Part shown: positions 3,336 to 57,505 of the stretch, one piece after another
Layout: each line of letters opens with the position of its first letter
Position numbering within the stretch: the first letter of the stretch is position 1
Source of the DNA: Zygnema circumcarinatum SAG 698-1b
Lineage: Eukaryota > Plantae > Zygnematophyceae
Assembly: GCA_037447605.1 (NCBI GenBank)
Contig: CM074804.1
Location: 620,001 to 684,000 of the forward strand
DNA length: 64,000 nt
Direction of reading: 5' to 3'
Translations under genes and position numbers: made by a program
Notes under the pieces: generated by a model
The model's database searches: none
What the model was told of the DNA's origin: nothing
Seen by the model: the letters and a program-made list of their open reading frames with translations, nothing else

Positions 3336-4735
3336 TTCGAACTTTTCACTTGGCTATTCGGTTCAAAGCCCCTTCACGCAGCCACAGAAGTAACTACCAC
3401 AATTAGGAAACTGTACTATCCAACCAATGAAAGACTGTATTTCTTTAGGTACACGAAACGTGATCAGAATTGAAAATTAGTCTGAAATGATTGACAAGCA
3501 ATGCTATGTCGATGCTGGTGTAATCCGTCTCCTCTCCTATATTGCCAGCTTGCATCAGATTTGGATGCCTATCTGCTTGAGGTTGGATGACGCCTTTCGT
3601 GGATGAAGAGAAAGGCGTTGGAGTTGGAGGCTCTGATCCAAATTTGAATCCGCTTAAACTAAGGGATGACTGCCCATCATGTTTGACTTGTGTGAGGAAA
3701 AGGTTACTGTTTTACAGAGGTTAAGGGGTAGATGATCAAATGCTGTTCCGCGCATCAGGGAGCACTTCAGGCCAAGTACGGCCTTGTACAAAAATGCTTG
3801 TGGGGGTGACGGAACAAGCGGAATAAGTACTTACCATCTGTGCTAAGCAAATTTATACAAATCTGCAGGGTATTCCTGTCTTTCACGACACATACACGTC
3901 TAGAACCTGTACATGAACAAACACCAATGGAAACCAGCCGGTCACACACCTGAGCTATAAAAGCGAAGGAAGGGTTATGAGCGAAACTCTGTTTCTAATG
4001 CAAACTTCTTCCGTGAAGTCTGCCTCGAGCCCTCTACTAACAACACGCCTCTAAATGCAGCCTCAAGAAGGTCGCCAATGTGGGCCACATCTCCCTGAGG
4101 GAGTGACGGCTTGCCATGGCCATGGCCCATCATTGCCCATGAAGGGTGGAAGCGAGGCAAGGAGGCAAACGTAAACGTTTGCATTGTAAGGACGGAGCAG
4201 CAACATTGTACCTTCCATACATACCTTGGGGGGCCTTTGGGCCCTCCCTAGGGCCCTCGCATGTGTGAACAAGCCCTTGCCCCCCTAGCGAGCGGCACAC
4301 GTGTGAACGCGGAGCCGCTGCATCCGACGTGCTCATGCGACAGCCATATCACTCTCCGCCAATCAGCGTCCCTCGCCCTACGTGTAAAGTGCCAGCGTGG
4401 CAGCACCGTCGCCATCGTATGGCTGCCACGTGGCCGCCCCAAGCCTTTGCGGATAGCTGCCTCATTCCCTTTCTTCGGTCCTTTTTCTCGCTCGCCTCTC
4501 TCGCACCCCTCTATCGGACCTGTCTGTCTGCTCTCTCTCTCTCTCTGTCTCTTTCTCTTTCTCTGTCGCAGTCTCTATGTATATGCATTTTCCAGTCCCG
4601 CAATGTTGTGAGGCAGCACTTTACTGATGTGGTAGCCCCCTGGAGAGGTGCGGGGGCAGGTTCGGCAATTGAGTGCACTCAGCCTGACGGCGGTTTGCCC
4701 TAACCTCGCAATTTTTGACAAAATTCTTGTCTTGG

Positions 4736-7700
4736 ATGTCCATGAGCATGCCAGCTATCGGCAGCGCCAGTGCTCCCTACTTTCTTGCAACTGCACCCGA
4801 CAATCCGTTGCAGAAAAGCACTTCAGGAAATATTAAGTGGTCAGGGAGAAGCAGATTGACTGCTCCGAACCCTAGCACTGAGCAAATGACTTGCCTACAA
4901 TTTAAATATCGCTGCTTATTGTCAATTTCCCCTGTGAATGCACCGGCACAGCCAACGGCAGCAGCTGTTGGATTTAATTTGGAAACAGTGGAATTGACTG
5001 TAGTGCCACATTCAGGCAGAAAAGGCAGAGGATTTGGACAAATTCACCCAGACCGGGTTTCTCGTCAAGTTTGTACTGCAGCAGGGGCAGGTCGAAGGAG
5101 GCTCAGCAGAAGCACGTGTGAATTGCTTTGGGGAAACTTTACTGGAGGCTCTTCAAGTGAATTCGAAAGTCGCAAGAGTTCCAGCACCCGGCCTGTTCTA
5201 TTGACAGAGGGGAAAGGGGATGGGCTGCTCTGGGCTTCGAAATGCAGCAACAGCTCTGCCCACGATTGCGAAAGTAGAGACCAGATGGAAGGAAACATTC
5301 CCAGAATTGGTTTGCAGCAAATTTTCGGGCAACTGCAGGACGGTTGCTGCTCACCAGCAGGCCGGGTAGCAATGAATTCACTCTCAGCCAATGGGGTCAC
5401 CGGAACGCCTAGAATTTGCTCCGTTCCTGCAGAAGTGGCAGCAGCAGAGGGCCTCCGAGGACATCAAGAATTCACCAGCCGAGTGCCGCCAAGTGAAGCA
5501 GCTCAGTCTTCTGCAGCTGCAATTGGAGATGCTGACGGTATTTCAGGAGAAGGTGTTTGCTTAGATGCGGAGGATAGGCTAGCGCAACCAGGCACTTCCC
5601 TTGAGGAGGAGTCTGGCCAGAGAAGTTTAGGTCAGCTGCGAAATCGGATAGTGTTTGGGACACTTATTGGGTTAGGAGCAGGGTGGGCTATTGTGGCGGG
5701 TGGCTGGTGGTTCACATCCATGATGGCGTTGATCACATTACTCGGAACTTGGGAGTATTTCGGCTTGGTAGAGGGCAAGGCTGTCCTTGCCAATGAAGCT
5801 CCTCCGCCGTTATTGGCCGTGCAGGCCTGCTGTGCGATGTCCTGCGGAATGCCTCTAATGACAATGTAAGGTTTGCTCAATCACGACTTCATTTTTTGTG
5901 TATAGATGGTTACGGGCGGTCCAAGTGGAGGACAATATGTTCAATTAGTGAGGAATGCGGCAGGAGAGTGTAGGGAGGAAGGTTCCCTGGTCAATTGTCA
6001 ATTTAAATGTGAGTTTTGGTCATGTCAATTTATGGGAGAAGGCAGCTTTTCGGAAGGAGTTGTCCTTTCACAATTCAGTGGGGAGGTTTTGAGAAGGTCA
6101 TGCGCTGCAATCGTGAATTGGTATGAATATTGAATACAGCGATGATAGAGTTGGTCTCTTGTCAAATGTGAGTCTGGTCATAGCCAAATTGAGAGAAGTT
6201 AAACGTAAGGAGTTTCTCTCAATTATCCAAAGTCAGGCAGGCGCAATGCCGGGCAGTAAAGGCTCTTCACTTCAACCTCAGGAGGAGGTCAAGCTTGTCA
6301 ATTACAGCAAAGGAGTCGTAGTGACTGCCGCTGAAAGAAATGGCAATTGCCAGGAAATGACGGAGTGTCAACAAGGGGGCCGGGGGCGGGACCAAAGGCT
6401 GGGAGATATACCATTGCTAGCAACATCAGAAGCGGGTTTTCTTGCTAGAAGTGAAAGATTTCAATTGTAAAAATCTTTATAATGGACATTCTTTATGTCT
6501 TTCCTAAGCTCTGCTCGATGTGATGTACAATTCAGGTACTTTGGAGGGAGGATAGGATGGGCAGTTGCTTCTGCTTTAGTTCTGCTAGTGGCTGTCGTGC
6601 TGCTACAGCCCACCAGATTGCGAAGAAGTCAAGGCACCAGCCTCCTATTTGGCCTTTTTTACTGCGGCTACCTTCCTGCATTCTGGATTAAGGTAAGCCC
6701 TCGAAATTCCTTTGGACAAAATTCTTCACTGTGACTTTGTTGTATCGTTTCCTGCGTAGGAATGCACATCTCTTTTCCTATGGGCAGGGTATAAAAATCG
6801 TAGAGGTTATACGCATTTGACAATACGAGATGCTCTCAGTCTCTAAAAGCTGACGAGATAGAGCAACAGACAAGGTGCATCCTAGTCTCATTATCGATCG
6901 TACACAGTGATTTTCTTCTTTTCACTGTTCCTATCGGGTCGATCTCTCAGTCTTTTCAAACCTTCTGGTCGTTGGGAGGGGTCCGCAGTTAAGGTGCGGC
7001 TTGCCAGCCTCTTTCCCATCTCCAACTGTTGCAACTTCTTTTGCTCAAGCGTGGCCAGCCTTTCTTGGAGGGCCTTCGTGCTGGAGTGTGGGAATGGTGG
7101 CAACCTTTTTAGCATTCTCCACCATAATAGCAGCCGATACTGGAGCATACCTTGGTGGAAAAACGTTCGGTCGCACAAAGCTGATTGGTAGGCTGACGCC
7201 TTTGCAAACCCTAAAGTCAAGAAACGTCAATACTTTCAAGAAACTGATGCTAGTTGGGCTCCTAGTGGTCTTCAGGGGCACACTCAAATTCTCCTTTAGC
7301 TGAACAGGAGTGTTCCATGTCTTCAGTCTTCGTTTTGCAATGCCTTTGTAAACAAAAGCTGGGAGTTTTAATGTGTGAGGGAGAGCTCGAGCAAAGACGC
7401 TACTTATTGTGGTTGTAATAATATGTCAGTAAAGTGACAGTTCTACGTCAATCAAAAACCCTCACAGAGCTATCCTATTTTGTGCACACTGTTCCTTCAG
7501 ATATAAGTCCCAAGAAAACGCGAGAAGGGGCAGCAGCAGGCTTGGCCTCAGCTGTGCTTGTTGCTGTCGTTCTCTCGAGGGCCTTCCGCTTCCCATCCTC
7601 CATCTTCAGGTCTGCATACATTTACACACAATTCAACCTCAATGGCAAGCGTTCTGATGAATGCTTTTCCTTGATTTTTGGTTAAAAGTTTCTTACTGCT

Positions 7701-8134
7701 GTTTCTTCCTTTCTTTGTTTCTTATTGCTGTGTTTATAAGCACTGCAACTGTACGGAACTGATGCTTGACCATGTAGGTGCTCCGAGTTGCTTGGAGAGC
7801 TTTGTGATGTTGACTTTTGACAGCTTGTGAAAGGCTGCAAACGAGAATGAACCCTTGCATGCTTGCAAGTCGGTGAAACCCTAAACATACTAAACATACC
7901 CTCTGAATGCTTGAACTGGATGGCAGTGCTGCGACCATGGCGGTGCTCATCTTCATGGCTTCTTTGTTTGGTGATTTATCGGAATCTATGATGAAGAGAG
8001 ACGCTGGAGTGAAGGACTCCGGCAGGTTGATTCCAGGACATGGTGGAATATTGGATAGAGTAGACAGCTATATCTTTACCGGAGCCCTTGTTTATTCGTT
8101 TCTCAAGATAGGCTTACCCCTTTTTGGATTTTAG
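4736..8134 (+). CDS. CDS4: Phosphatidate cytidylyltransferase (CDP-DAG synthase), plastid CDS4/5 type, about 600 aa
   Basis: join(4736..5865,6536..6692,6989..7187,7501..7609,7927..8134) is in frame. Contains QLRNRIVFG, IIAADTGAYLGGKTFGRTKL.DISPKKTREG and GDLSESMMKRDAGVKDSGRLIPGHGGILDRVDSY (CTP_transf_1 signature). The ATG choice is uncertain. Confidence 0.93.
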
Positions 8135-8195
8135 GTTTAAAATTTCCAAAGTTTAGCTATTGTGCTTTGCTGTTCCGCGCTTGGCAAAGGACCGA

Positions 8196-9121
8196 AGAAG
8201 AAGGAGAACGGGAAAAGCATGTGCTGTGAAGGGCCGTCACCTTATCTGTTGAAGGCTTTAAGTGACTCAACAATGAAAGTCTGCTTTCTCTATTCCGCTG
8301 ACTAATGACTACAACGGTGTGTATGCAATTTCAAGTTTTTGTTGGCTTCCAGCAAAACGAGGCAATGTGAAACCAGTCTTGCAGTAGCTGGACATGGACA
8401 AACCCCGCTTGGGAAACCACGAGATGTGCCACTTTCAAAGACGAGCCTTCCATCGACAGGAACACAAAACAGACGTGGCGTGACATCACTGGCCGTGTAG
8501 TACACGTGACATGCCGGCATTGGCCGTGATGTACACGTGGCATGTCGTCATTGGAGGGTGCTTGACAAGTAGTTCGCAGTCCAAGCGCGTCCCCTTGAAA
8601 GGATGTGTTTTTGTCAGCAAAAACACTTTTGTCACCACGTGGCGAGTCCGTACAGGACCCACAGCCACGTGGCGTTTTTTGGAAGGGAGCGGCCCCTGTT
8701 CGGCGTCGCCTGGCTCTGCAAACGCTTGGGCGCGCGAAAAAATTGAACCCGCCCCGAGCGCGCTCGTTTCCGCGCCAAAAGGATATATTTGCCCTGCAAG
8801 GCGCTGCTGCTGCTGTTGCTGCTGCTGCGAGGGAAGCGGGCGAGGGCGAGGGCGAGGGAGGCTGTCTCAAAGCCTGCAAGCACCGAAGGCGCAGAGCAGG
8901 AATTATTTTTATCTATTCGTAAACTTCTTTTGAAGAGCTCCAGAAAGACGTCGCCATGTATGCTCGTTCCCTCGCTTGAGCTTCCAGATTTTTTTTCTTT
9001 CTGCCGCTGGTTTGAAATCTCTGTTGAGGATTCCCTCATTTGCAGAAGGTGAAAAAACTTGCTGATTTCCCTTTCTCTCGCGTTTTTGTTTGCAGGTCTC
9101 AAGCAGTAGTAAGTGCCTCCC
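8196..9121 (+). repeat. Copy 1 of the triplicated DMC1 upstream unit (promoter, exon 1, intron 1, start of exon 2)
   Basis: Colinear and highly similar to about 13163-14121; homology ends at ...gtagtaagt(g/t)cctccc (9121 vs 14121). Confidence 0.95.
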
Positions 9122-9543
9122 AAATAGATCTGGATAAGGCACAGAAGGAGAACCAGGAATTAAAGACCAAGCTCTCGGAGATGGAGAGAGCGAAGGAGAG
9201 TGAAAAGGAGGCACTAGCAAGTCAGGAAACCAGAACTCTTGAAGGCAGGATCAGCAAGTTGGAAGGACTTTGGAGGAACGAGACTGCGCTGAAACAGAAC
9301 GCGGAGGAAATGCTGAAAGAGCGGGAACTGGAGTCGCGACGGATCCAAGAGAGTCTTCAAAAAGAGGTGGAGAGGGAAAAAAAAACATCAACGGAATTGG
9401 TCCGTTATCTTGAGATAATCTTGGCAAGAGATATCGAGCAAACCGTGCGGAATGCCTGTTTGGAAAGGAAGCTGGAAGCGCAGACTGGGGAAATGCGTCT
9501 CTTGGAAGAGCGACTTCGAACCATAAACGACAGACTGGCATGA
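8956..9543 (+). CDS. Chimeric coiled-coil protein (149 aa) starting with the DMC1 N-terminus MSQAVVSAS
   Basis: join(8956..8957,9096..9543): AT|gtatgc...ttgcag|G TCT CAA GCA GTA.. then an open, E/K/L/R-rich ORF (DLDKAQKENQELKTKLSEMERAKESEKE...LLEERLRTINDRLA*). Expression is not demonstrated. Confidence 0.6.
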
Positions 9544-10252
9544 GGAGGTTGGTTCAACAAGTGGTGAAAGCCAAGGAATCGTGCAAAGTTATGGAGGCCG
9601 AGTCTCTCGTCTTCTTTGTCTGAGAATTTAACTCTCATAGGAGTGCCGTCCAACCCCCTTATAGCTGTCTAGGGATCCCGTGTTCGGTTTGGTCCAGGAA
9701 CTGAATTCGTGGAATCATTACAGAAATCGTTGTTTTTGTTCATCTTTGTTCGTTTCTGCGGTCGACGTGAAATCCTGAGTGATGTTTCCGATTTTAAGGT
9801 TTTTAGCTGCTCGTCACCGTTTCAATCTGTCGCACTTGTATTGTTTTCTTATTTGGCGGTGCAGGTGAAACGAACAAAGGACGAGACGCGTGTACAAGAA
9901 AACCCAAACCTTTGGTGTTCTTGGAATGCACAAGCTAAGGCGTTAAGTGAAGATACTCAGCAACTGGACGACAATGCATTTCTGTAGTATAGTATAACGA
10001 GAAGAGGGAGGAAGGGAGAGGAAGTGGGAGTGTAGCACATGCTGCAGGGAACGTAGCAAATTGTACCATGAGGGTTTTGGTCACAGGTCATCATTTCTTG
10101 TAAAAAGTAAGTGAGTCTCGGCAGTGCAAATTCACAATCTTTGTTTCTTTGGGCAGCAAAGACCCTTATCAGATTCTTCATAGTGCGTGTACATTGGTCA
10201 ATTTTTGGAAAGTGTTGTTCTGGATCATCTCTCTGCCTCTTTCTGCCTCTCT

Positions 10253-10608
10253 CTGACTGCTGACAGGTCTTAACAACTTGGATAAGTTTGAAGAAGGAGA
10301 ACAGAAAAAGCATGTGCTGTGAAGGGCCCTCACCTTATCTGTTTAAGGCTTAAAGTGACTCAACAATGACAGTCTGCATTCTCTATTCTGCTGACGAATG
10401 ACTACAACGGTATGAAATTTCAGGTTTTTGTTGGCTTCTAGCAAAACCAGGCAATGTAAAACCAGTCTTGCAGTAGATAAACATGGACAGGCCCAGCCTG
10501 GAAAACCACTAAGAGCCGCTATCACATACGAGCCCTCCGACAGGAACACAAAACACACGTGGCGTGACGTCATTGATCGCGCTGTACATGTGGCATGACG
10601 TAATTGGC
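10253..10608 (+). repeat. Copy 2 of the DMC1 upstream unit (distal promoter only)
   Basis: ctga..gctgacaggtct.aacaacttggataa.tttgaaga..catgtgctgtgaagggcc...aaacacacgtggcgtga matches about 13129-13520 and, from the gaagaaggagaac block onward, about 8196-8552. Confidence 0.92.
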
Positions 10609-10615
10609 CATCATC

Positions 10616-10850
10616 AGGGGCATGGATGGCCGTCCGATGCGAGAAGGGAAACCGTACGATTGCCGCTGGATTCGAGGGCTGCCACCCGCGACCGTCAGAT
10701 GCGGGCCCTTCCAGTTTACCGTATACGGGACAGCACGCGAGGCAATTTTACGATATACCGCCAAAGAGTCGACGAGAAACCAACCGCAGGTCGAACCATT
10801 CATTGGATCAGCAGGCACATTCAACCAATGGTTGGTTCAACCTCAATGCA
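10616..10850 (+). mobile_element. Dispersed non-coding repeat family A, partial copy (probable non-autonomous TE fragment)
   Basis: Similar to the reverse complement of 43870-44106 and to 57116-57255 (shared gaccgtcagatgcgg.cc.ttccagtttaccgta, gagaaaccaaccgc.ggtc.aaccattcattggatc.gcaggcacattcaaccaatg). No terminal hallmarks identified. Confidence 0.7.
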
Positions 10851-10912
10851 GATTCGGAAACCACGAAGACCCGCCTGCCCGGCCCCGGGCCCAAAGGGCC
10901 CCTCCCTCCCTC

Positions 10913-13114
10913 CGTTTTTGTCTGCAGGTCTCAAGCAGGAGTCACCGCCCAGGGAATCAATGCTGGAGATGGCAAGAAATTTTGCGATGCTGAAATTATC
11001 ACCTGGAATGAAACACTTATGCGAAAAAAGAAGGTGAAGAAACGCTCATGCTTGACCGCTTGCAATTTCAAGAATAATTCTACATTACAGTCGAGAACTG
11101 GTGCAGTCCACCTTATTAAATGCATAGCCTGGCCGCCAGCAGAATCTATTTTCTTTGTGTTGGAAGCGAACTCAGTAGTGAATACAGAACTGGCTTAGAA
11201 TTGATGTGTTTGCGTTTTATGTGCTCTACTCGCTAACGTGAAAGGGATGTCGGAGGCGAAGGTTCACATAATCTCGGAGGGTCTTACAAAGATTTTTGTT
11301 AGCGACTTCAATACCAATACCTATCTCTTATATTATGCAATGTTCTGCTGTTTCTCGAGAGTAAACTTGAAGATAATGTCATCAATTCTTTTTGTAATCT
11401 CAGGAAGAGGCAAGAGCGAATACGCATTGTAATAAGATCGCTGCAAAGTATACCAATGCTTCTCAGAATATTGTTATTTTCCTCTCCAGAGGTAAATTGA
11501 GTTTTTTAAAATTTATTGAAATCCTTTTTTTTTTCTTGCAGTTTGATCTTTTTGACGTGAGTTGTTATGTCTTTTGCAGAATGATGGACACATCATAGGA
11601 AATGAAGCTCTTAACAAATTATGTTTCCAGCATACCGTATTTTTAGTTACAGCCATGCTTTCATCGGTTAACACTGATTTTTTTTATTGTCGAGCATGCT
11701 CGCATTTGCTGAAGAAATTCACAACTCAATTCAGATTATTCTTGCGTAATACAACAACCGTATCTTAGAAATCTTGTAGCTCGTGCTTCAATCAGAGCTT
11801 GCATTGAAAAATTAATGTGTTTTGCTTATTCTCCTTTTGCTTTCCTGCAGCGAAAATCTGGCTTTTTGATAGGCTCTGGCAAGGTGCCGGCGAAGGAGGA
11901 GGAGTTGTCGGCAAGGGGAGGAGGGAGAGGAGGAGGGAGAGGAGGAGGGAGGGGGAGGAGTGGAGGTCGAGGAAGAGGTAGAAGTGCAAAGAGAGGAACA
12001 GCAAAAGTCGTGGAAGCAGAAGCAAAAGCAGAAGGAGAAGAAGAAGAAGGAGCAAAAGCTCCACCAACAACGGAACGGATGCCTGGGAACGGTCTAGCAG
12101 GACGGAGTGAGACTGACGGGAGAAAAGTTGAAACAAATGGCACCAATGCAGCAGAAAAGCATAAAGAGAATCGACATCGGCTGTAAGAAGACGTCGAGGT
12201 TTATCCTCCTACGGTTCCTGGAGACTTGAAAGGGCAATGAACATAAACTTCATGATTACCTCTGAGTTAAATACCGCAGTCACAGGCTTGTGTCCTTCAC
12301 TTAATTATTGACTATCATTGCATCCTAGCATTTTAATTGGATAATGCAGGCCTCCGAAAGGCTCCACGAACAAACAGAATCTGAACTTTGTGAAAAGCTG
12401 TTTGAAAATGGAAGGAGAGAAAGGTACGTGGGAAAATTCTTTAGCGGTAGCCATAAAGCGACCAGGTAAGCTGGAAGAAGATACTTACCGTTGTTTGACG
12501 TCACCCAAAAAGTTTCAAGTTTCCATCAAAATGTTTGTTATATCTCACGAATACTTAGGAACTAGGTTACTGTTGTTGGCGTTTTCATTTCCTAGTTACT
12601 TAGCTTCGTTTGTAATGCTTGCAGAACATGAAAACGTTGCCGATTCATTGCTGAATCAAATGAACTGCGTCCACTATGCATCCAGCTATTGGAGCAGCGT
12701 AACCAGCATGAAGAAGATGTGAAAATGGCAGAGATTTTTAAAAGGGCAGAGATTTCTAAGCTGGTGGAAGCAAAGGAAGCAAGTGATGCGAAGCTTGAGC
12801 AGGTAATTTAAGGTTAGGTCGTTTTTAAGGTTTTACGTTTTAGGTTTTGTTTTACGCTGGACTATTTAATGCTTGATTGTTGCTATGGCTTCTCCACGAC
12901 CAAAGGGCGAAATGGACATGTCCCCTGACATCCTTCATCCTTACAGGCGCACAGAACCATCAAGCTTTTGGAAGACGAGCCTTCGAACGAGCGGGACCGC
13001 ATCAAGCTTATAGAAGCTCAAAAGTTTAGAGACGCTCAGGACTTGCTCGACTGTGCTAGTGCTTTAGAGACAGTGAGAGCCTCTTGTCTAGCGGTACCAT
13101 CTAGCAGCACATAA
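10913..13114 (+). pseudogene. DMC1: Degenerate DMC1 5' duplicate (exon 2 start to exon 6 start) fused to RGG-rich and coiled-coil exons
   Basis: 10913 to about 11860 is homologous to DMC1 14081-15394 with most of exon 2 and intron 2 deleted. Many amino-acid changes ([35 protein letters not shown]); exon-4 acceptor lost; exon 1 absent. Continues as RKSGFLIG..RGGGRGGGR.. and phase-consistent exons 12350-12423, 12625-12802, 12947-13114, with stops at 12184-12186 and 12629-12631. Confidence 0.85.
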
Positions 13115-13385
13115 GGAGTCGATAATGCTGATCGCTGACAGGTCTCAACAACTTGGATAATTTTGAAGAGGGAGAAGGGGAAGTGCATGTTATGTGAAGG
13201 GCTGTCACCTTATCTGTTGAAGGCTTAAAGTGATTCAACAATGAAAGTCTGCTTTCTCTATTCCGCTGACGAATGACTACAACGGTGTGCATGCAATTTC
13301 ACGTTTTTGTTGGCTTCTAGTAAAACGAGGCAATGTGAAACCAGTCTTGCAGTAGATAAACTTGGACACCCCCAAGTTTGGAAAC

Positions 13386-13760
13386 CACGTGGAGCCGCTT
13401 TCACAGACGAGCTTTCCCCATCCAGCAGGAACACAAAACACACGTGGCGTGAAATCATTGGCCACGCAGTACACGTGCCATGCCCGTATTGGCCATGGTG
13501 TACACGTGGCATGTCGTCATTGGAGGGTGCATGACAAATAATTCGCAGTCAAAGCGCGCCCCCTTGAAGAGGAGTGTTTTTGTCAGCAAAAACACTTTTG
13601 TCAACACGTGGCGAGTCCTTACAGGACTCACAACCACGTGGCGTTTTTTCATTGGAAGGGAGCGGCCCCCGTTCGGCGTCGCCTGCCTCAGCAAACGATT
13701 GGGCGCGCGAAAAAATTGAACCCGCCGAGCGCGCTCGTTTCCGCGCCAAAAGGATATATT
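13386..13760 (+). promoter_or_regulatory. DMC1 promoter with six G-boxes (four CACGTGGC/ABRE type), two E2F-consensus sites and a TATA-like element
   Basis: CACGTG at 13386, 13441, 13472, 13503, 13605, 13635. GCGCGAAA at 13705-13712 and GCGCCAAA at 13743-13750 (reverse complements TTTCGCGC and TTTGGCGC fit TTTSSCGS). gatatattt at about 13753. Confidence 0.6.
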
Positions 13761-13773
13761 TGCCCTGCAAGGC

Positions 13774-13807
<34 letters not shown>

Positions 13808-13941
13808 CGAGGGACGCGGGCGAGAGCGAGGGCGAGGGCGAAGGAGGCTGTCTCAGAGCCTGCAAGCACCGAAGGCGCAGAGAAGGAATTATTTTTAGCT
13901 ATTCGTAAACTTCTTTTGAAGAGCTCCAGAAAGACGTCGCC

Positions 13942-16900
13942 ATGTATGCTCGTTCCCTCGCTTGAGCTTCCAGATTTTTTTCTTTCTGCCGCTGGTTTGA
14001 AAGCTCAGGCAGACTTTGGTACTGTTGAGGATTCCCTCATTTGCAGAAGGTGAAAAACCTTTGCTGATATCCCTTTCTCTCGCGTTTGTTTGCAGGTCTC
14101 AAGCAGTAGTAAGTTCCTCCCTGGAGGACCGTCAAGCATCAGATGTTCACGAGTCTGAAGAAGAAGAAGATTCATTTGAATCCATTGACAAACGTAAGTG
14201 GTCCTTCAGGTGCGAGTCAATGTTATTAGACTACGTGGAGTCTTTAAGTTAATTCAAGAAGATGCGTGCCTTTCGTAAGGATACAATCTATACACATCCT
14301 TCACAAGCTCTGCTTTGTGTTACAATTCATTGCGACTGTCCAGGTTGTGAAGTTGTGTGTGATCCTCAATTTTGATGTGCAAAACATGACGTTTCTTGCT
14401 TCTCTCCATTTCAAATCGACCTGCTGCAACCAATTACCTGACCAACGTTTGTTTGCACAGTCACCGCCCAGGGAATAAATGCTGGAGATGTAAAAAAACT
14501 GCAAGATGCTGGCATTTTCACCTGCAATGGCCTACTTATGCGAACAAAGAAGGTGAAGAAACGCTCATGCTTGACCGCTTGCAATTTCAAGAATAATTCT
14601 ACATGATAGTCGACCACTGGTGCAGTCCACCTTATTGAATACATAGCCTGGCCACCAGCAGAATCTATCTTCTTTGTGGTGGAGGCGAACTAACCAGTAG
14701 TGAATACAGAACTGGCTTAGAATTGATGTGTTTGCGTTATATGTGCAGGCACTCTGTAACGTGAAAGGGCTGTCGGAGGCGAAGGTTGACAAAATCGTGG
14801 AGGCGGCTGAGAAGCTTGTGGTAGCAATACCAATACTTGTCTTTTATATTTTGCAATGTTCTGCTGTTTCTCGAGTGAAATCTTGAAGATAATGTCATCA
14901 AGTTCTTATGTTGTCCCCTTTTTTATTTTGTAATCTTAAAACGATGCAAGAGCGAATACGCATTTTTATGGGATAGTTGAATGCTGCTCAGAATATTATT
15001 ATTTTACCCTCCTGAGGCAAATCAAGTTTTTTAAAATTTATTGAAGTACATTTTTTTCCTGCGGTTTGATCTTTTTGACGGGAGTTGCTATGTCTTTTGC
15101 AGAATCTTGGATACATCACAGGAAATGAAGCTCTTAACAAAGTATGTTTCCAGCATACCATATTTTTAGTTACAGCCATGCTTTCATCGGTTAACAGTGA
15201 TTTTTTTATCGTCAAGCATGCACGCATTTGCTGAAAAAAAATCTGAACTCATTTCAGATTATTCTTGCGTGATACTACAACCGTATCTTAGATATCTTGT
15301 ATCTCGTGCTTCAATCAGAGCTTGCCGGTAATTCAGCATTGAAAAATCACTTTGTTTTACCTTTCTCCTTTTGCTTTCCTGCAGCGAAAATCTGTTGTGC
15401 GCATCACAACTGGAAGCCAATCTCTTGACGAGCTCCTTGGCGGTGAGGACATTTTAAATTTGGACATCTATCAGTCAGTATGGATTATCTGTTGGACTTA
15501 CATTCGGCACTTCTTTAAAAAAACACTCACTATTATGTCCCCCCGTTACAATCATGTTATTGCAGGTGGTATCGAAACAATGGCTATTACGGAAGCCTTC
15601 GGGGAGTTCAGGTGATATTCCTCATCCATTAGGCTGAACGAGATATCTCCACTTCGTCGAAATAAAATTGGATATCCTGAGCAGATTGCAAAAGCACGAC
15701 TCACTTTCGTAGGCCAGCTGTGTCAATCGCTAGTGTTTTCTTTCATTTATAGGCTTTGAAAGCATGACAGTCCATGCCATTGAACGTTGTGCAGGACTGG
15801 GAAGACACAAATAGCGCATACTCTATGTGTATCAACCCAGGTACTTTCGGTTACCCAGCGGGCGCATTGTATTCCGCAAGGATCAAAGAGCAGTTGTTTT
15901 AGATGAACTTTACGGATGAAGGGTTAACTTATCATCCCTGATGAGTCCCTGATGAGATCATTTTCTGAATGCAGCTTCCCTTAAGCATGCACGGTGGAAA
16001 TGGGAAGGTAGCCTACATCGACACAGAAGGCACGTTGTATCCTCTCACACAAATGGGATTGTTGGCACCTCCAAACTTAGCAAGAAAACACAAGTTTCAT
16101 GATTCGAACAAGTAACGTCGATGTTTCCTTGACTTGCTTGTTCGACAGTCGACCAGATCGAATCATTCCAATTGCTGAAAGGTTTGGTCTGGATGCCAAC
16201 GCTGTTCTGGACAATGTGAGCAATCCCTTTTCACCACAGAACTGTTGTTCGCATTTTACAAAGGCTTGATTTCCTGGATTTTCTGGCCTTGTAATGCTAT
16301 ATAAGTAAGTAGCTACCTTCACCGCAATGCTTTTCTTGAACATGTAGGGTAAGCATGATGTCCTTCTCTTTCATATGATAATCTGTTTCTTGCCTGCGAA
16401 CCACTCCTGGATGACACATCTTTGTGCTAATTTCAGATCGTATATGCAAGGGCATACACTCATGAGCATCAATACAACCTGCTGGTCGCATTAGCAGCAA
16501 AGATGTCCGAGGAGCCTTTTCGGTTACTGGTAAGACTTTCCATAGTATAACGTTGGGTTTGCGAGGCTCTCGATTAGCCCGCTGTTCGATTAGCACTTTT
16601 CGCGATTGCAGGCATTCTTACGAGATATTAAAGCAGTTGGAGTTACCGTGTGTGCAACAGGTTGTGGATTCCATCACAGCCCTCTTTCGTGTGGACTTCT
16701 CAGGCCGAGGAGAGTTAGCAGAGCGTCAAGTACGTGTGCTAGTGTTGAATTCGTGATCAACGCTGAAAGATTGCAATTGCGTGTGCTTAATCAGAAGAAC
16801 TGATGCGATGCCAACCCATTCTTCATGTGGCTCTCTTCTTTTCTGCATGGAACTGGACTATATGGCAATGAAAAGAACGCACAAATGCATGTGGAAAGTA

Positions 16901-17562
16901 TGTGGAGACTTATGCAAAGTCGCTTTGGTGTCGCTGCAGCAAAAGCTGGCCCAAATGTTGTCCAGGCTCACAAAAATCGCGGAGGAGTTCAACGTTGCTG
17001 TCTACATGACCAACCAAGGTAAGGCATTGACGCGGAAGTCGTTGAAACCCTCGTGGAATGCAAGTCTTCTTAGAGTCTTCTTAGGAAATCGGTGGTGAAA
17101 CCTGCGTTAAATGTATACCTGAAACTATAGCTGGGATGGCCTTAATGTCACTTATTCGACAGGCCGAATAATTGCTCTGCTCTCTTTGCCAACTTTCCAG
17201 TGATTGCCGATCCTGGAGGAGGCACTTTTGTCACGGATCCAAAGAAACCTGCCGGAGGACATGTTCTTGCGCATGCTTCCACAATTCGCCTGATGCTACG
17301 GAAAGGCAAAGGGGAGCAGAGGATCTGTAAAATATACGACTCGCCCAGCCTTCCTGAAGCTGAGACAATATCCTTCTCAATTTCTTTGCAGAGCGATGTT
17401 TGTTGGATACTTGGAGTACTGCTCTTTGCTTGTGTTTATCTTGAGCTCCAATCTGCATTTCTTTGGCCAAGAAGACAAACAAGCACTTCTTTTGAGGTTG
17501 TACTTGACTTTTCACACACCTATCAGATTAGCAACGGAGGCATCATCGACGCAAAGGACTAA
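13942..17562 (+). CDS. DMC1: Meiotic recombinase DMC1, 344 aa, 15 exons
   Basis: join(13942..13943,14096..14193,14461..14552,14749..14820,15103..15141,15385..15442,15566..15611,15795..15840,15975..16036,16149..16215,16437..16529,16661..16729,16940..17018,17201..17367,17518..17562) = 1035 nt, open. Walker A GEFRTGKT, Walker B LLVVDS, and DMC1-type [44 protein letters not shown]. Confidence 0.97.
16037..16148 (+). other. U12-type GT-AG intron in DMC1 (intron 9)
   Basis: 5' site GTATCCTC; branch-site-like TTCCTTGAC close to the AG; no polypyrimidine tract. Splicing restores EGTF|RPDRI. Confidence 0.88.
17368..17517 (+). other. U12-type AT-AC intron in DMC1 (last intron)
   Basis: 5' site ATATCCTT; branch-site-like TACTTGAC about 9 nt before the terminal AC. 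Removal gives EAET|[14 protein letters not shown], the expected DMC1 C-terminus. Confidence 0.92.
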
Positions 17563-18289
17563 ATTTAAGGGACTTGACCACACGCTTTTTTATCAAGACT
17601 GGATTTTCACAATGTTTGAGTATGCCAAATATGACGCCTTACAGCACCAGTTGACGTACAGTACCAACTGTCTCAGTAGCTGGTACTCTTAGTAGGCTGA
17701 GGCCTTGGCTGAGTAAGGTACGGCACTGTCAAGTTGATTAGGTCACCAGGGAACTTCAACACTACAGGCTTTGGGATTATTGGGGTTTTGCTGAAGTGGC
17801 AGGCTGCTTGCATGTCAGAGATGTATATTCAAACACACTCCACTGAGGTGACTTTCGTTTCTGTGCATGGTAATGCTATTTTTTCACGGGTTTTTACTTT
17901 ATTTCTAGGCTAACGGCGGCTAGTTTTGACAGGTAGCTAGATGATGATCTTTTGATGGCAACCATGCGTGTGTCCTTTCGCCTACGATTCGAAGTTAGTC
18001 GGTGAAGAGTTCTGTTCGAGGTGCGTTGAGTTTGTTGTTGAGTTTTGCTTGTATGCTCTGTCTAGACAGCCATAGACCTGTCCTTGGCCTTGCGTCACAT
18101 GAGATGGGTAACCGCGTGGCAGTCAGGAAAAACGTACTGACTTCAGCTGTGTAACCGACTGACTATCTAACAGACTTCTCCCCTTTGCGCACCTCTCCTC
18201 ATCGAAAAGATCTGTCAGAAAGAACAACATGGGAATGAAGGTACCTGTCGGTCATCACCATCTCAATGGGCAGGAGAAAGTGGAGGGGA

Positions 18290-18835
18290 TAGAGGGAGAG
18301 AAAGGGGTCGTCAGAGTCGAATATGGGGGCAGATGGAGATAGCGAGGGAGGGAGAGGGAGGAGGAGACTGGCGGATAGGGACAGATGGAGAGTGACAGGT
18401 CGAGGGAGAGTGAGAGGGTAGGGGCAGGCAGAGGGGAAGAGAGAGAGTGGGCGGGGGGGGGGGGAAGGGAATAGGGGGAATAGGGGCAGCTGAGAGGGAG
18501 AGGCAGGGGAAGAGGGAGTGACAGGAAATACAGGTTGAGAGGGAGAGAGAGGATAGGGGCAAGTGGAGAGGGACAGGAAAAACAGAGGGAGTAGGGGCAG
18601 GTGGAGAGGGAGACAAGGGGAGGGAAACACACGGGATAGGAGCAGGTGTAGAGGGAGGGGGAGACGGGATAGGGGCAGGTGGAGTGGGGGAGCTAGGGAG
18701 GAAGGAGAGGGAAAGGAAGGGCGGTTCAGAAGGCATAGGAGCAGGTGGAGAGGGAGAAATAGAGAGAGAGGGAAAGGTCGAAGGTGAGAGACAGAGGGAG
18801 GGAAGCTAGCGGGAGAGGGAGAGGGTGAGGTGGGG
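18290..18835. repeat. Degenerate purine-rich (G/A) tandem repeat
   Basis: Recurrent units such as ataggggcaggtggagagggag. Almost no pyrimidines on the + strand. Confidence 0.8.
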
Positions 18836-19440
18836 GCAACATCCAATGACTAGTTTAGATTCATAATAACTTCCATCGCCCTCATCCACCCGCCTCCTAT
18901 CACACTTCCAAACAAGACCCAACGCACCAATTGTGTGCGAGGCACACCATAACTTTATTTCTTGGGAGGAGCTCCCAAGAGACTGTGCTGCCATCTAGCC
19001 CTCCCTCCCTCCCTCCCTCCCCACCTCTCTCCCTCCCTCCCTATGTCACCCTAACACTTGCAGGGGCCGGCAGAGAGCGCTATCTGGAGTGTGCATCGGC
19101 AGCACCACTCTCCTCCCGAACTTGTTAGTCCTGTCAGAAACTTCACCTCCTCAACTTGCTTGAGCGGAAGTTCTTTGCACATTTACACCTGGTCGTTGGC
19201 TGGACTTGAGTGGACTGGACGCTGCTCGTTCCGTGGCTTCCCAGATTTGCTGAGGACAAGACGCTGACTAATTTTTCGGCCGGTGCTGTCCCTGGGAAAA
19301 AAATGGTGGACAAATGTGAAGAGAGGCACTCTCCCTGCTGAGCCTCTAAAGCCGAACTCTGCCGTAAGCTGCCTACAAAAAAATTGCGAAGGCTAAGTTA
19401 AAACCACCGCTTAAAGGCTAAGTTAACCCATTTCGACCGG

Positions 19441-23091: not shown

Positions 23092-24404
23092 TCTAAGCCT
23101 CTTGATTAACACCCCCCCCCCGGCTTCAGTTCCCCTACAGATCTCCTTTAAAAATCCTGTAAAGAAAAAACCTAGAATATTACAACATCCTCAGACTCTA
23201 ATGCACATCTGCAGCTCGCCATGGCGCCAGCCAGTGGCCTCTGCCACTCCCCTAACTTCACAACCCCCTGCAGCTCTCCGCCATGGCCGACGATAATGCT
23301 GAGGATAATGACGTTGAGGACGAAGATGATGCAGCTGCACTGCCTGATTCCACCCCTGCTAACACATAATCTCCTTCATATAATCTCCCTCCTCTCCAGC
23401 TCCCAAGCGCACCTGCACTCCCACTCCCTCCCTCCCAACTTTAGGGTATCCCGGTATTCTCTCTGGTCTTGTCGTCACCGCTCGCCACCTCCTGTCCGCT
23501 AACAGGTCATGGGACATTAACAGCTGTACGATGACCAGTACGGTAGCCGGGACCGTGCTTTTGGTTACAGTACTGGTACTGTACTCATAAGCGGACGGAT
23601 TCTGTAGGGTCACAGGCAGACCTCTGTTACCTGATGAGAGATGGTTGGCCATGGGGTCGATAGGAGTTTGGTTCCGTACCGTACGAATAAAATACGGACA
23701 GGCGTACACCTGGGCCAGCCAGCACCGTACAGTACGGTTCTAGTAAATTTTGAGGGCGTTTTGCCATTGCGCTTCGGAATTAGTTTGAAATAAGTACTTA
23801 TCATTTAACGTTTATCTGTGATTCGCTGGATGTTGTGTACTCACTCTAATAGACTTTCCTTTCAGAAATGCCAAAACCCAATGGCGGCCGACGGTTCCAT
23901 GGAGCATTTGGGCGTCGTGTGCGACGCGTCACACAGTTCCATGTGCGCGCGTTTTGCCAGCGTGGCTACCACGCTGGCGCTTGGCGAAAGGTGGACTCCG
24001 ATAGAGCGCGTGCCTGTCCAATCGCGCGCCGTCACGTGGCAATAGAGAAGTCCCACGTGCTGTCTGTGCCACGATGGCACCCGCAGATCGAGGTGGCAGC
24101 TTGCATCGAATTGGTTGAGGCCACGTGGCCAGCTCTGATTAGCAGCACGGGCTGCATTTTAAAACGTGGCATCCGATGTGGCGTATTTACGACCGTCCGA
24201 CGAAATGTGTTTTGTACTGTATACAACGACAAACAAATATTGTCTAAAATAAGAGGTCGTATTTGCTAGCTATTGGTTGCTATTTTCTGAAAAAAAAAAA
24301 AAAGCCAATACAATTTAAAACTCTTAAAGCCTCTAACCTTGAATCCTACTTGAACCTTAAACCCTCACTTTGGAAAGGGTTGAACTTTCTTCTTCTGCAC
24401 CTCC

Positions 24405-40984: not shown

Positions 40985-43286
40985 CTATTCCAACCCATAT
41001 TCTGCAAACTTTTCTCTCAATGTTCGGCTGCCCTTCATGGTCGCTTCAAGATCCTCTCTCAACACTTCAAGCTCCCCAGCATTCTTAGGCTCCACTTGAA
41101 AGGGCAGCCCTATCTCTGCAAGGTCACCCAAAATAGCATCCCTCAAACCAGGTATTCTGGACCCTGCGATTATTCGCAAGACAGGCCCCAAAGTCGAACC
41201 TCTCTGAAGCTTTAAGTCAATCAGCTTCAGCCAACGCAGCAGGGCCATCCTTGCTACGGGCACAGGGAAGGAGTGGATATTGAGATCGTAAGAAGTTTTG
41301 AATTTGAAGCAATAGTGTAGGGGCAACCCCCTCTCCTCTGCCAGAATAAAGAGTCCTAGAGCGACTTTCTTCTGACCTAAGTTCAGAACGGTGTGGAAAA
41401 TATGGAGGAACATCCTCTTTACATGGTCTATGAATCTGACCCTCGAATTGTCCTTCAACATGTTGGTGACCCATTGGTGCAGAGCATACTGAAAAGGGGT
41501 CTCCTCCCATGCCCTTAGGTCAAGCAAGGTCGTAAGGTTCTGGCCCATTTCACTGTCCACAACAGTCAAGACTTTCAGGCATTCCTGTACTTCCTCTGAA
41601 TCTGCAGGTCCCTTCAAGCGTGCTATATGCGCAAGGAGCATGCAGAGACATCTGTGATCAGGATAGCTCCCTTTCCTCCGGAATTTATCCATCAGTTCCA
41701 AGCAATCAGTCCATCTATTCAAGCGGAGAAACTGCTTCATGGCACATGTCAGTACGTTAGATCTAATCCAAGGGGGGATAAAATCAGTCTCGAGAATCTC
41801 GGCGACCGCTTTATCCAATTTGTCGGTATTACCAGTTTTACCATAGAAGCTAAGTCTCACATAAGCAGCGTGCATTATCCATGAGATTCCCGCCTCTTCC
41901 ATTCGCTTAAAGACCTTCTCAAAGTTATCCAAATCATTGACCTGTGTATAGGCTCCAGCCATGTGAACAAAAGTGATATAATTCGGAGGGATACCTGCCG
42001 CTTTCATTTCTTCAAAAGCATTCTCCATCTTTGCAAGCTCTCCCATATCTCCCAGTCGCCCTATCAAGATATTGTAGGTCTTGTCGTTTGGACACAGTCC
42101 AAGCTCTTTCATCCGACTCAGTGCCTCAAACATCTCCTTTGCCCGGCGCGCACTTCCGTAACCTTGTATAAGACCGTGCCACATGAAGTGGTCTGCCTTT
42201 TCGGCAGACGGGAGTTCATTAACGTAATTTTCCGCATCTTGGATCTGATCTTTCAGGAACAACGCCTTCAATAAGGAGGAACGGTGATGCTTGTTTAATT
42301 GAATGCCCTCGCTTTTCATATTAGATAGAATGGCATGCACACGACTGGTCTGATTTGCGCCTACCAGAATTTTCAGTATCAGGCTGTAGTCAAACGCATC
42401 CGGCTGAAACCGGAGCCTTTTGTTCAGTGCAATCCAATTGAAAACCTGGATGGCAGATAGCGAATTCAGTTCAAAAATAAACTGAATGAACAACAACAAC
42501 AACAACATTAGCATAAGCCTTCTTATATGTAGACTGCTTCATCTTTTTTATTTACATTGCATGTGAGGACGAAGGGAGGAAAGGGGGAAAGGATGGGAAA
42601 GAGGCCAGACGAGCGAAGCAGGAACGGAAACGGAGACGAAGGTAAAAATGAAGGCCAGGAAGAGTATGTGCAGAGAGAGGGAGGGGGAGAGGGGAGGAGC
42701 AGGGGGGGAAGGAGAGGGAGAGGGAGAGGGAGGAATTTACATGCTAAGGGAGGGATAGGAAGAGCATTTGATGCTCGCTTACCCACAGCGCAAGGCGCCA
42801 TGCATGCAATCGTGAAGCTCTCATCATTGTTGCCCGCAAATGCTCCTGTTTTATGTGACGTTCCATTTCATTCAGCACTTTCTCACACTCATTCCAGGAT
42901 GTCGAGCCAAGGAGGCCCTTCCAAAGCCGGCCTGCCACATCATTCGATATGATCTTCTTGTCTGTCGACCAATCCCTGAGTTGCCTGCTGTGGCTGCGAG
43001 ATTGCTGCAAGGAGCCACGATGTGTGATGCAACAGAAGCCTGAAACTCCATTTGCATGCTGATATGATGAAAGTGACTCCAGGGGTAATGGCCCAACTAA
43101 ACTGAAACTTTTATTAGCCCACACAACTGACGGTTCCTTGACCCCCAGCCATGGCGCCCAGCCCCCAGAAAGCTGCGGTTGAAGCTCCTCGCTGATCCGT
43201 CGGAAAACAGAGAGGAGTCCTCCATAGCCATGGCGCCTGCATGCCTTCTCCGCCCTGCAAACCCTAAGTATCTCCTTTCCAGCCAT
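40985..43286 (-). CDS. P-class pentatricopeptide repeat protein with a C-terminal SMR-like domain, about 654 aa
   Basis: complement join(43286..42783,42445..40985) is in frame. PPR repeats (PDAFDYSLILKILV, PNDKTYNILIGRLGDMG, PPNYITFVHMAGAY) and an SMR-like end (LNIHSFPVPVARMALLRWL..LRIIAGS..LRDAILGDL). Confidence 0.88.
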
Positions 43287-43869
43287 TGCATGCAAATTCC
43301 ACAATAACCTTCCTACTCGCAGGCACGAGGACATGGAAACGAAAGTTCAACTGTTAGGAACCGACGGTCAAGAATCCTGGCAACAATAGCCTTTAGACAT
43401 CCTCAAATCCTAAATTATCTGGACATATCCGCATGAATTCCTGCAACAGAATCCTTCAATCCTGAGCTATCTGGACGTGCCAAGCCTCTTACATGCAAGC
43501 GGCAGGAATGTTGCGGAGTCCCACACACCTCCGCCAGCTCATTGCGCTGGCCTTCACTCAAAGTTCAGCAAGGAAGCGCTAGCGGCGTGCAGGAACGCGC
43601 CATGGCTGTGCTTCAGCGCTTTGGCCCTTCCCACTCGCATCAGCAGCAAAGGCTTTGTCCTCCGCTGTATCGTTCTTCCTGCGATATACCTCGATCGAAA
43701 TGTGTCGCATATCGTGGGGGAGCCGCAGTGCCTTTCCTTCTGTGCATGACATTATGGAAACAACTTATGTGAGTCATTGTGAGTCTTTCAACATCTTTTC
43801 TCTAACGTGAGTAGAAGCCAAATTCGTTCAGGAAATGAGGTGGGGTTGTCAACGAGGGCCGTGTTCGGG

Positions 43870-44516
43870 TGAAATGTGCCCGCTGATCCAATGAATGGTT
43901 CGACCTGCGGTTGGTTTCTCATCGACTCTTTGGCGGTATATCGTAAAACTGCCGCAAGGAGCGCCATCCCGTATACGGTAAACTGGAACGGGGCCCGCAT
44001 CTGACGGTCGGGTGTGGCAAACCTTCCAATCCAACGGCCAGCCATGCTGCGATCCAACGGCAATCCTACGGTTTCCCTTCCCGCATCGGACGGGCATCCA
44101 CGCCCCTCAAGCCGCATGGGCCACACTATGGCACTGCCATCGCTAATACCATCCCCCATTTCTTTCCTCTTTCCTTGTAAGACATAAACGAGGTACACGA
44201 AAAGAAAATAGAAAAGAAGTGGCATTGATCTCACGATGGCGAGGCCATCAAATGTACATGGACAACATCAGCATGGGGAACCACGAGGAACTGGGCGCAA
44301 AGGACCCAAACCCAAAAGAAAAAAGCTTGGCGCGGAACTAGAGGTATTAGACGTCTTCATAATAAAGTAAAGCGCGCGATGGCAAAGCCATGGAAAATCA
44401 GAAAGGGAACATTGAACTCAAATAAATGGGGTCGTGTGAGGTTGGCAGTTAGAGCGAGTGCTCGGCCAAGAAGCAGCCATGGATGGATGGGAGAGCAGGC
44501 TCAACATGCGGAGTAG
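43870..44516 (-). mobile_element. Longest copy of dispersed repeat family A
   Basis: The reverse complement of 43870-44106 matches 10616-10850 and 57116-57255. The reverse complement of 44446-44516 matches 57045-57115. Confidence 0.7.
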
Positions 44517-56652: not shown

Positions 56653-57505
56653 GCGGGGAGAGGGAAGGAGGGAGGAGATGGGCGAGGGAGGGGAAGGAGA
56701 GGGAGGGAGAGGAAGGTGAGGGAGGGTGATGGGAGAGGGAGGGTACGAACTCTGTTGTGAGCTGTAGTTAGGAGAACTTGGAGGTCTGGGTCGGGCATCT
56801 ATTAACTGATTGTATATGACAAGGTAGGGAGGGGTGGAAGCGAAGTGGCAGTAGGGGACCCATGTACTGTAATTCGTACTGCTTGTTTACATCTTACATT
56901 TTACAAATAATCGAACTCATTACCCAGTCCCTGCATGCGCAATTCAAGCTTTCGGGCATTAAAAATTTAGGAGCGTCAAACAAACACACCAAGCTGTCCC
57001 ACAAATTAGATTAACAAAATCAAATTTGATTATTTAATTCGAGCCTACTCCGCTTGTTGAGCCTGCTCTCCCATCCATCCATGGCTGCTTCTTGGTCGAG
57101 CACTCGCTCTAACTGGACCGTCAGATGCGGCCCCTTTCCAGTTTACCGTAAACGGGACGGCCCTCCTTGCGGCAGAGTCGATGAGAAACCAACCGCTGGT
57201 CAAACCATTCATTGGATCGGCAGGCACATTCAACCAATGCTTGGTTCAACATCAATTCGAGGGCGGGGAGAGGGAAGGAGGGAGGAGATGGCCGAGGGAG
57301 GGGAAGGAGAGGGAGGGAGAGGAAGGTGAGGGAGGGTGATGGGAGAGGGGGGGTACGAACTCCTTTGTGAGCTGTAGTTAGGAGATCTTGGAGGTCTGGG
57401 TCGGGCATCTATTAACTGATTGTATATGACAAGGTAGGGGGGGGTGGAAGCGAAGTGGCAGCAGGGGACCCATGAACTGTAATTCGTACTGCTTCTTTAC
57501 ATCTT
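56653..57505. repeat. 243-bp direct repeats (56653-56895, 57263-57505) enclosing a captured RCC1-gene fragment and a repeat-A fragment
   Basis: The two copies align end to end with few substitutions. Internal 56904-57002 matches 58064-58163; 57045-57255 matches family A. Confidence 0.9.

Follow-up and report, generated by a model that had tools for sequence, protein, structure and literature searches.

In the genome of the zygnematophycean alga Zygnema circumcarinatum SAG 698-1b (NCBI GenBank assembly GCA_037447605.1), an intact DMC1 gene lies about 5 kb downstream of a partial copy of its own 5′ end, and this partial copy is joined in frame to an unrelated coding sequence. Both are located within the stretch of 64,000 nucleotides analyzed here (contig CM074804.1, positions 620,001 to 684,000 of the forward strand; in the following called the window, with position 1 being its first letter). 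From left to right, the locus comprises a CDP-diacylglycerol synthase gene (CTP_transf_1 family) ending at 8134, the partial copy with its attached coding sequence (copy 1), a second and decayed copy (copy 2) and the intact DMC1 gene with its own upstream region (copy 3). Copy 1 starts 62 bp 3′ of the stop codon of the synthase gene. A sequence-only reading of this DNA had described copy 1 as a young chimeric gene, in which a coiled-coil open reading frame (ORF) had taken over the promoter, the split start codon and the first nine codons of DMC1.

Structure of the chimeric gene

The following features, all on the forward strand, make up copy 1, the attached coding sequence and the corresponding part of the intact gene:

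8197..8700, +, copy 1, distal section of the DMC1 upstream unit; corresponds to 13165-13673 (88.5% identical; 58 of 502 sites mismatched); three modules of a G-box and a CCAAT-type box, and two more G-boxes
8701..8955, +, copy 1, proximal promoter followed by the 5′ leader; about 96% identical to its DMC1 counterpart; E2F-type sites, a TATA-like GATATATTT and a (GCT)n/(GCGAGG)n microsatellite
8782-8790, +, the TATA-like GATATATTT, a putative TATA box for a putative transcription start
8956..8957, +, AT of the predicted split start codon and end of exon 1, followed by the donor GTATGC; same as DMC1 13942-13943
8958..9095, +, intron 1 (138 nt), from GTATGC to TTGCAG; 97.8% identity to DMC1 intron 1, with 3 mismatches at 135 sites and 4 insertion or deletion (indel) events
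9096..9121, +, DMC1-derived start of exon 2, i.e., the G of the ATG and the codons for SQAVVSAS; 25 of 26 bases as in 14096-14121, the sole change being TCC to GCC (S to A)
9122..9543, +, unrelated tail of exon 2; counted from the codon at 9121, the frame stays open over 140 codons until the TGA at 9541-9543; predicted long helix or coiled coil
9544..9700, +, putative 3′ untranslated region of approximate extent
13165..14121, +, copy 3, of the source type, being the 5′ end of the intact DMC1 gene from the promoter through leader, split ATG and intron 1 to nucleotide 26 of exon 2

The segment 8197-9121 is a direct copy of 13165-14121; the two align over 965 columns at 88.5% identity, with 846 matched and 72 mismatched positions and 10 indel events. 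The 925 bp of 8197-9121 comprise nearly all of the intergenic promoter together with leader, split start codon and intron 1, and end after 26 nt of exon 2. The last homologous position is exactly 9121/14121, after ...GCCTCCC, i.e., after the codons for MSQAVVS(A/S)S, which is where the sequence-only reading had placed the end of homology. Its description of the copied signals is borne out as well. Copy 1 contains four CACGTG motifs (G-boxes; 8503, 8534, 8636 and 8666) as compared to six in the DMC1 copy, and both E2F-type sites (TTTSSCGC) are retained (8732-8739, corresponding to 13705-13712, and 8772-8779, corresponding to 13743-13750). The 5′ leader is kept, and the donor AT/GTATGC (exon end at 8957) and the acceptor TTGCAG/G (exon start at 9096; slashes mark the exon borders) are the same in copy 1 and DMC1. 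The leader of copy 1 is free of any ATG and the predicted stop codon of the chimera falls into the last exon. As no in-frame ATG was found in DMC1 exon 2 when read by eye, and as the ORF running through the upstream intron of copy 1 begins with TTG and has no ATG before the tail, the split ATG would be the simplest start for both DMC1 and copy 1.

Beyond the nine codons shared with DMC1, the frame runs on into the tail. The predicted spliced coding sequence (8956-8957 and 9096-9543) encodes 149 amino acids, consisting of MSQAVVSAS and a tail of 140 residues, and does not include any internal stop codon. The tail is rich in glutamate (20%), leucine (14%), arginine (11%) and lysine (9%), and 41% of residues are charged. 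An open run of at least 140 codons occurred in only 0.1-0.2% of dinucleotide-preserving shuffles of the local sequence (P = 0.001-0.002), so that the in-frame continuation, which had been noted from the letters alone, is unlikely to have arisen by chance. The other five frames of the tail region contain one to seven stop codons each. With a codon table trained on DMC1, one pentatricopeptide-repeat (PPR) ORF and two exons of the upstream synthase gene, the tail scored +0.40 per codon in its own frame, compared with -0.13 and +0.17 for the other forward frames, -0.15 to -0.20 for the reverse strand and -0.27 ± 0.08 for introns, and for E, K, Q, L and R it prefers the same synonymous codons as the training genes. 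AlphaFold, run on the single sequence of the 149-residue product as had been suggested before, predicted one helix spanning residues 2-147 with a mean pLDDT of 95. As shuffles, codon usage and predicted helix are three independent measures, the tail is a real coding sequence and not a chance ORF.

Whether the predicted helix forms a coiled coil is less clear from these data. The heptad-like character ascribed to the tail is most evident in residues 95-149, in which 10 of 16 a/d positions are hydrophobic, as compared to about half elsewhere. The hydrophobic periodicity was weak at the expected spacing (P = 0.10 at 3.5 residues) and somewhat stronger at 3.6 residues (P = 0.036). Given the 41% of charged residues, the tail may also be a single stable charged helix. 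Independently of its exact fold, the chimeric gene structure is genuine: the promoter, leader, split ATG, first intron and first nine codons of DMC1 are joined in frame to a native-looking orphan exon of predicted coiled-coil type, with the parent DMC1 gene being intact, as the sequence-only reading had stated.

The G-boxes of the copied promoter do not by themselves point to meiosis. In the distal part of the DMC1 promoter (8473-8560 and 13441-13530) three tandem modules of about 31-35 nt are found, each containing a G-box (ACACGTG) and a CCAAT-type box (CATTGG). CACGTG is about threefold over-represented across the whole window (24 observed, 7.8 expected) and clusters at other promoters, too. 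As this holds window-wide, the G-box is a general promoter motif in this DNA rather than a meiotic mark. Further CACGTG clusters are located at 4298-4432 and 24033-24127, one of them being upstream of the CDP-diacylglycerol synthase gene.

The parent gene extends from 13942 to 17561 and has 15 exons. The 13 introns modelled are bounded by GT-AG throughout, the 14 modelled exons form one stop-free frame, and the remaining last intron was read by eye. A comparison of one exon with solved structures was ambiguous with regard to the distinction between DMC1 and RAD51; this was decided by the per-exon scores of the NCBIfam models. As TIGR02238 (DMC1) gives a higher score than TIGR02239 (RAD51) for each of the eight conserved exons, with totals of 298 and 214 bits, these models identify the gene as DMC1 and not RAD51. 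The last intron (17364-17530) offers one canonical donor option, GAT/GTTTGT near 17397, with which the C-terminus, in all other respects collinear with those of other DMC1 proteins, would be longer by six residues (ISLQSD); a collinear splice would require a non-canonical intron. Directly 3′ of the gene, about 650 bp of purine-rich, low-complexity sequence (GGGAGAGG-type units) are found at 18200-18850. On the other side of the gene, coiled-coil-like exons of an orphan gene are present at 12350-13113, with a TAA at 13111-13113, about 13 nt before the DMC1 upstream unit. These exons had no Pfam match and did not yield a consistent exon chain.

History of the copies and origin of the tail

The three copies were compared on the stretch which is common to all of them (8197-8527). 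Private changes amounted to 17 in copy 1, 24 in copy 2 and 20 in copy 3. As the resulting tree is star-like, the duplications appear to have happened close in time or as one complex event. The divergence between copy 1 and DMC1 is unequally distributed along the copied unit. In the distal 500 nt, 58 of 502 sites are mismatched (11.5%), which corresponds to a K of about 0.12, whereas proximal promoter, leader, intron and exon start together contain only 14 mismatches at 416 sites (3.4%, i.e., 96.6% identity; Fisher P = 3e-6). The 3 mismatches in intron 1 alone equal 2.2% (distal vs. intron, Fisher P = 4e-4). This step could have two origins. Selection on shared regulatory sequence is one of them, but an intron should not be constrained to this extent, and for this reason we infer that the proximal part of copy 1 was homogenized with DMC1 by later gene conversion. 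The claim that the chimeric gene is young needs to be qualified in this respect, as its distal part shows a K of about 0.12 with all copies being about equidistant, and as its high proximal identity looks like the trace of later gene conversion.

Copy 2 occupies the following position:

about 10250..11870, +, decayed copy 2 of the DMC1 unit; distal promoter, dispersed repeat (10616-10847) and degraded DMC1 exons 2-6

It shares 84% identity with copy 1 and 86.9% with DMC1 over the gene body. The dispersed repeat takes the place of its proximal promoter, exon 1 and intron 1, the exons are altered and one acceptor is lost. Copy 2 had already been described as decayed, and judged by these lesions it is dead. 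The repeat, which is about 230-290 bp long with about 80% identity between its copies, is also present at 43868-44107 (reverse strand) and 57116-57256 (forward strand), and is probably a small non-autonomous transposon. At the right end of copy 2 (11861-12186), the first 10 nt of DMC1 exon 6, ending at 11870, continue in the DMC1 frame into an ORF of about 105 codons which is first RGG-rich, then acidic, and ends at 12186. This is a second in-frame junction at this locus, located behind a dead promoter.

A simple tandem duplication was considered as the source of the copies. It predicts homology between 9122-10249 and 11871-13125, and none was found (the right-hand stretch being compared from 11967 on). 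As copy 1 begins only 62 bp after the stop codon of the synthase gene, the original 5′ exons of the tail would either be gone from this locus or have never been there.

A search for relatives of the tail, as had been called for together with a search for its donor, gave no family, no homolog and no donor within the window. No Pfam family was matched above sub-threshold noise, and none of Swi5, Mei5, TBPIP and Mnd1 was matched at E-values of up to 1. The tail did not match Rad51/DMC1; the N-terminal exon shared with DMC1 is also without a family match and lies outside the TIGR02238 model. Relatives were absent among the proteins of 77-245 residues in a library of 5.8 billion entries (word-indexed search). 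An exhaustive HMMER search of 1.84 billion representative proteins yielded a sole match, an immunoglobulin-repeat protein which matched a motif of 33 residues seven times and was judged spurious. A protein atlas gave only generic coiled-coil fragments. In the window itself, blastn and tblastn found no donor at the DNA or protein level, and no second copy of 9122-10257 is present. The protein libraries seem to lack the proteins of this alga, as the first exon of the synthase gene finds relatives of only 62% and 43% identity and as the PPR ORF is not on record either, so that an absent self-match carries no information on expression or annotation. This PPR ORF (40988-42514, reverse strand) is an uninterrupted frame of 509 codons for a pentatricopeptide-repeat protein (PPR_2, E = 6e-21), the exact sequence of which is not on record in the public gene collection.

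Transcription, selection and competing explanations

Expression of the chimera was assessed with 87 sampled 31-mers of 8840-9700, which were looked up in eight sequencing runs listed under an RNA filter. Five of the eight runs, originating from two studies (one guessed to be RNA, four of unknown kind), contained shares of 0.69-0.76. As only 7% of the 31-mers from 8840-9700 recur at other places of the window, the matched words are words of copy 1. A spliced mRNA would give an expected share of 0.67-0.80, unspliced RNA or DNA 0.87-1.0, and a transcript starting inside the intron 0.64-0.76. Since the observed shares fit spliced mRNA better than DNA, transcription is favored, with the predicted splice being compatible but unproven, and the chimera is probably transcribed. 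The shares require words from beyond the stop codon, or from leader or intron, and fit a spliced mRNA ending at about 9620-9700. ORFs in 9544-10257 had no family match.

Together these observations are best explained by the following series of events. A 5′ copy of DMC1 would have been fused in frame to an exon that was already there, the terminal coding exon of a native coiled-coil gene specific to this lineage. The three copies of the DMC1 unit would have arisen roughly together. The product would be a two-exon chimeric gene of 149 codons, with nine residues from the variable N-terminus of DMC1 and 140 residues in a long helix. Later gene conversion with DMC1 would have homogenized the proximal promoter, leader and intron of copy 1 and thereby kept its regulatory and splice signals fresh. 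Transcription would start from the copied E2F/G-box promoter, splicing would join 8957 to 9096, and a small charged coiled-coil protein would be made wherever the DMC1 promoter fires. We hold this explanation as a whole, i.e., the in-frame fusion of promoter and start codon to a native coiled-coil exon, gene conversion and probable transcription, with slightly better than even confidence.

Several points weigh against it. The flanks of the three copies are mutually unrelated. The idea of a pre-existing native exon is founded on the length of the ORF and on its codon usage, a parent gene for the tail not having been found in the window or in the protein libraries. The share is 0.00 in three runs labelled as RNA, which come from the same species and a third study, the kinds of the sequencing runs are guesses ('RNA?' or '?'), and the observed shares also fit a transcript starting inside the intron. 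The 8957/9096 junction, the transcript ends and the strand are predictions. Finally, the frame could have survived by neutral drift. Of all single-base changes in the tail, 5.9% would create a stop codon, and with the distal, whole-unit or proximal divergence as neutral clock the probability of an intact frame is 0.21-0.65 for substitutions alone and 0.06-0.09 with promoter-type indel rates, which are inflated by microsatellites.

The intact frame had been taken as a hint at selection, which receives little support from these values, and the retention of four of six G-boxes at 88.5% identity is at chance level (P = 0.31). Selection can therefore be deduced neither from the kept motifs nor from the frame, neither being significant. 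It is consequently possible, with a probability clearly below that of the favored explanation, that the chimera is transcribed as a functionless by-product and that its ORF is the not yet decayed remnant of a truncated gene without selection on the protein. The neutral survival of the 140 codons and the chance-level G-box retention fit with this idea, as do the missing homologs in the protein libraries searched and the decay of the sister copy 2. Moreover, many chimeric structures which arose by tandem duplication in Drosophila alter expression without having a known function (Rogers et al., 2017; PMC5460883). However, survival is low at the distal rate once indels are included (0.06-0.09), and the codon usage of the tail is still entirely gene-like. 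The near-identity of proximal promoter and splice signals with DMC1 also speaks against a by-product, although gene conversion explains it without any selection.

The chimera might also be a silent relic, i.e., a DNA structure that is not expressed as the predicted mRNA, with the matched words coming from DNA or from read-through of a neighboring gene. The guessed run kinds and the three RNA-labelled runs devoid of copy 1 words are in line with this. Yet, five independent runs from two studies exhibit near-equal shares, whereas DNA would give about 1.0 or scattered values, and their contig totals of 36-40 million letters look like those of transcriptomes. A silent relic hence appears unlikely. 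Equally doubtful is a different gene model, in which another start, a transcript from within the copied intron or an internal GTAAGT (9106-9111) would reduce the DMC1 piece to an untranslated region or promoter, and the protein would lack its MSQAVVSAS start. The measured shares would also agree with a transcript beginning near 9040 (0.64-0.76), within the tail an in-frame ATG first occurs at 9181-9183, and the consensus-like GTAAGT is part of the DMC1-derived 26 nt. However, the identical GTAAGT within DMC1 exon 2 cannot be the main donor there, as the downstream part of this exon, which we take to resemble other DMC1 N-termini, continues the frame into the region of the family model. In addition, the leader does not offer a competing ATG and the split ATG is kept in both copies.

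Capture by a mobile or selfish element of the Pack-MULE or Helitron type, which the sequence-only reading had put forward in the form of a selfish element, or an assembly artefact is very improbable: the dispersed repeat did insert into copy 2, but there are no inverted repeats of at least 40 nt in 6000-18000, within the window tail and flank are single-copy, neither a transposon domain nor a transposon family was matched, and the copies differ by 11-16%, have different flanks and, in the case of copy 1, have specific words in five independent runs.

Comparison with known systems

The chimera shares with DMC1 the promoter, leader, split start codon, first intron and nine N-terminal residues. 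Unlike the members of the DMC1/RAD51 family, it does not contain any recombinase domain (RecA-type ATPase core), and judged by its predicted protein it is not a DMC1 paralog or a family member in the functional sense. Small coiled-coil proteins, namely Swi5/Sae3, Mei5/Sfr1, Hop2 and Mnd1, act as accessory proteins of meiotic recombinases. Like them, the product of the chimera is short, charged and predicted to be helical, and it might be expressed together with DMC1. It differs from them in its lack of Pfam matches as given above, and they are at most possible relatives. The fusion might even have placed a lineage-specific coiled-coil protein under DMC1 control, and this protein might now have a working role in meiosis, for example, as part of the chromosome axis or as an accessory to a recombinase, with recurrent gene conversion locking its expression to that of DMC1. 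We consider this scenario improbable at present.

If expressed as predicted, the locus would represent a clean natural case of promoter and start-codon capture in a streptophyte alga. Almost no donor protein was carried over, so that a new role, if there is one, has to stem from the time and place at which the tail is produced, and the chimera is a testable candidate for a lineage-specific gene under a meiotic or cell-cycle promoter. Within the copied unit, identity jumps sharply from 88.5% to about 97%, which suggests an ongoing exchange between DMC1 and its partial copy and bears on the question of how duplicated regulatory regions come to remain similar. In the literature, no report of this locus was found; a Spirogyra genome paper mentions DMC1 in passing only.

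The closest known systems are the chimeric genes of Drosophila, of which jingwei and Sdic are the classic examples. Chimeric genes originating from partial gene duplication were surveyed in Drosophila and were shown to shuffle regulatory regions and to alter expression (Rogers et al., 2017; PMC5460883). The locus in Z. circumcarinatum differs from these in four aspects. Its three copies have unrelated flanks, so that a simple tandem duplication fails as an explanation; a second parent was not found in the window or in the protein libraries; just nine codons come from the 5′ parent, which makes the protein essentially the tail alone; and part of the copy has since been homogenized with the parent, if the gene conversion reading is correct. 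As in Drosophila, the 5′ regulatory region and the first exon or exons of one gene are followed by what is probably the 3′ part of a second gene, the frame crosses the junction, the parent is retained, and expression is expected to follow the captured 5′ end. The chimera belongs to the well-known class of genes born by partial duplication, and as this route of gene birth is already well documented, it adds a further case to this class rather than a new principle.

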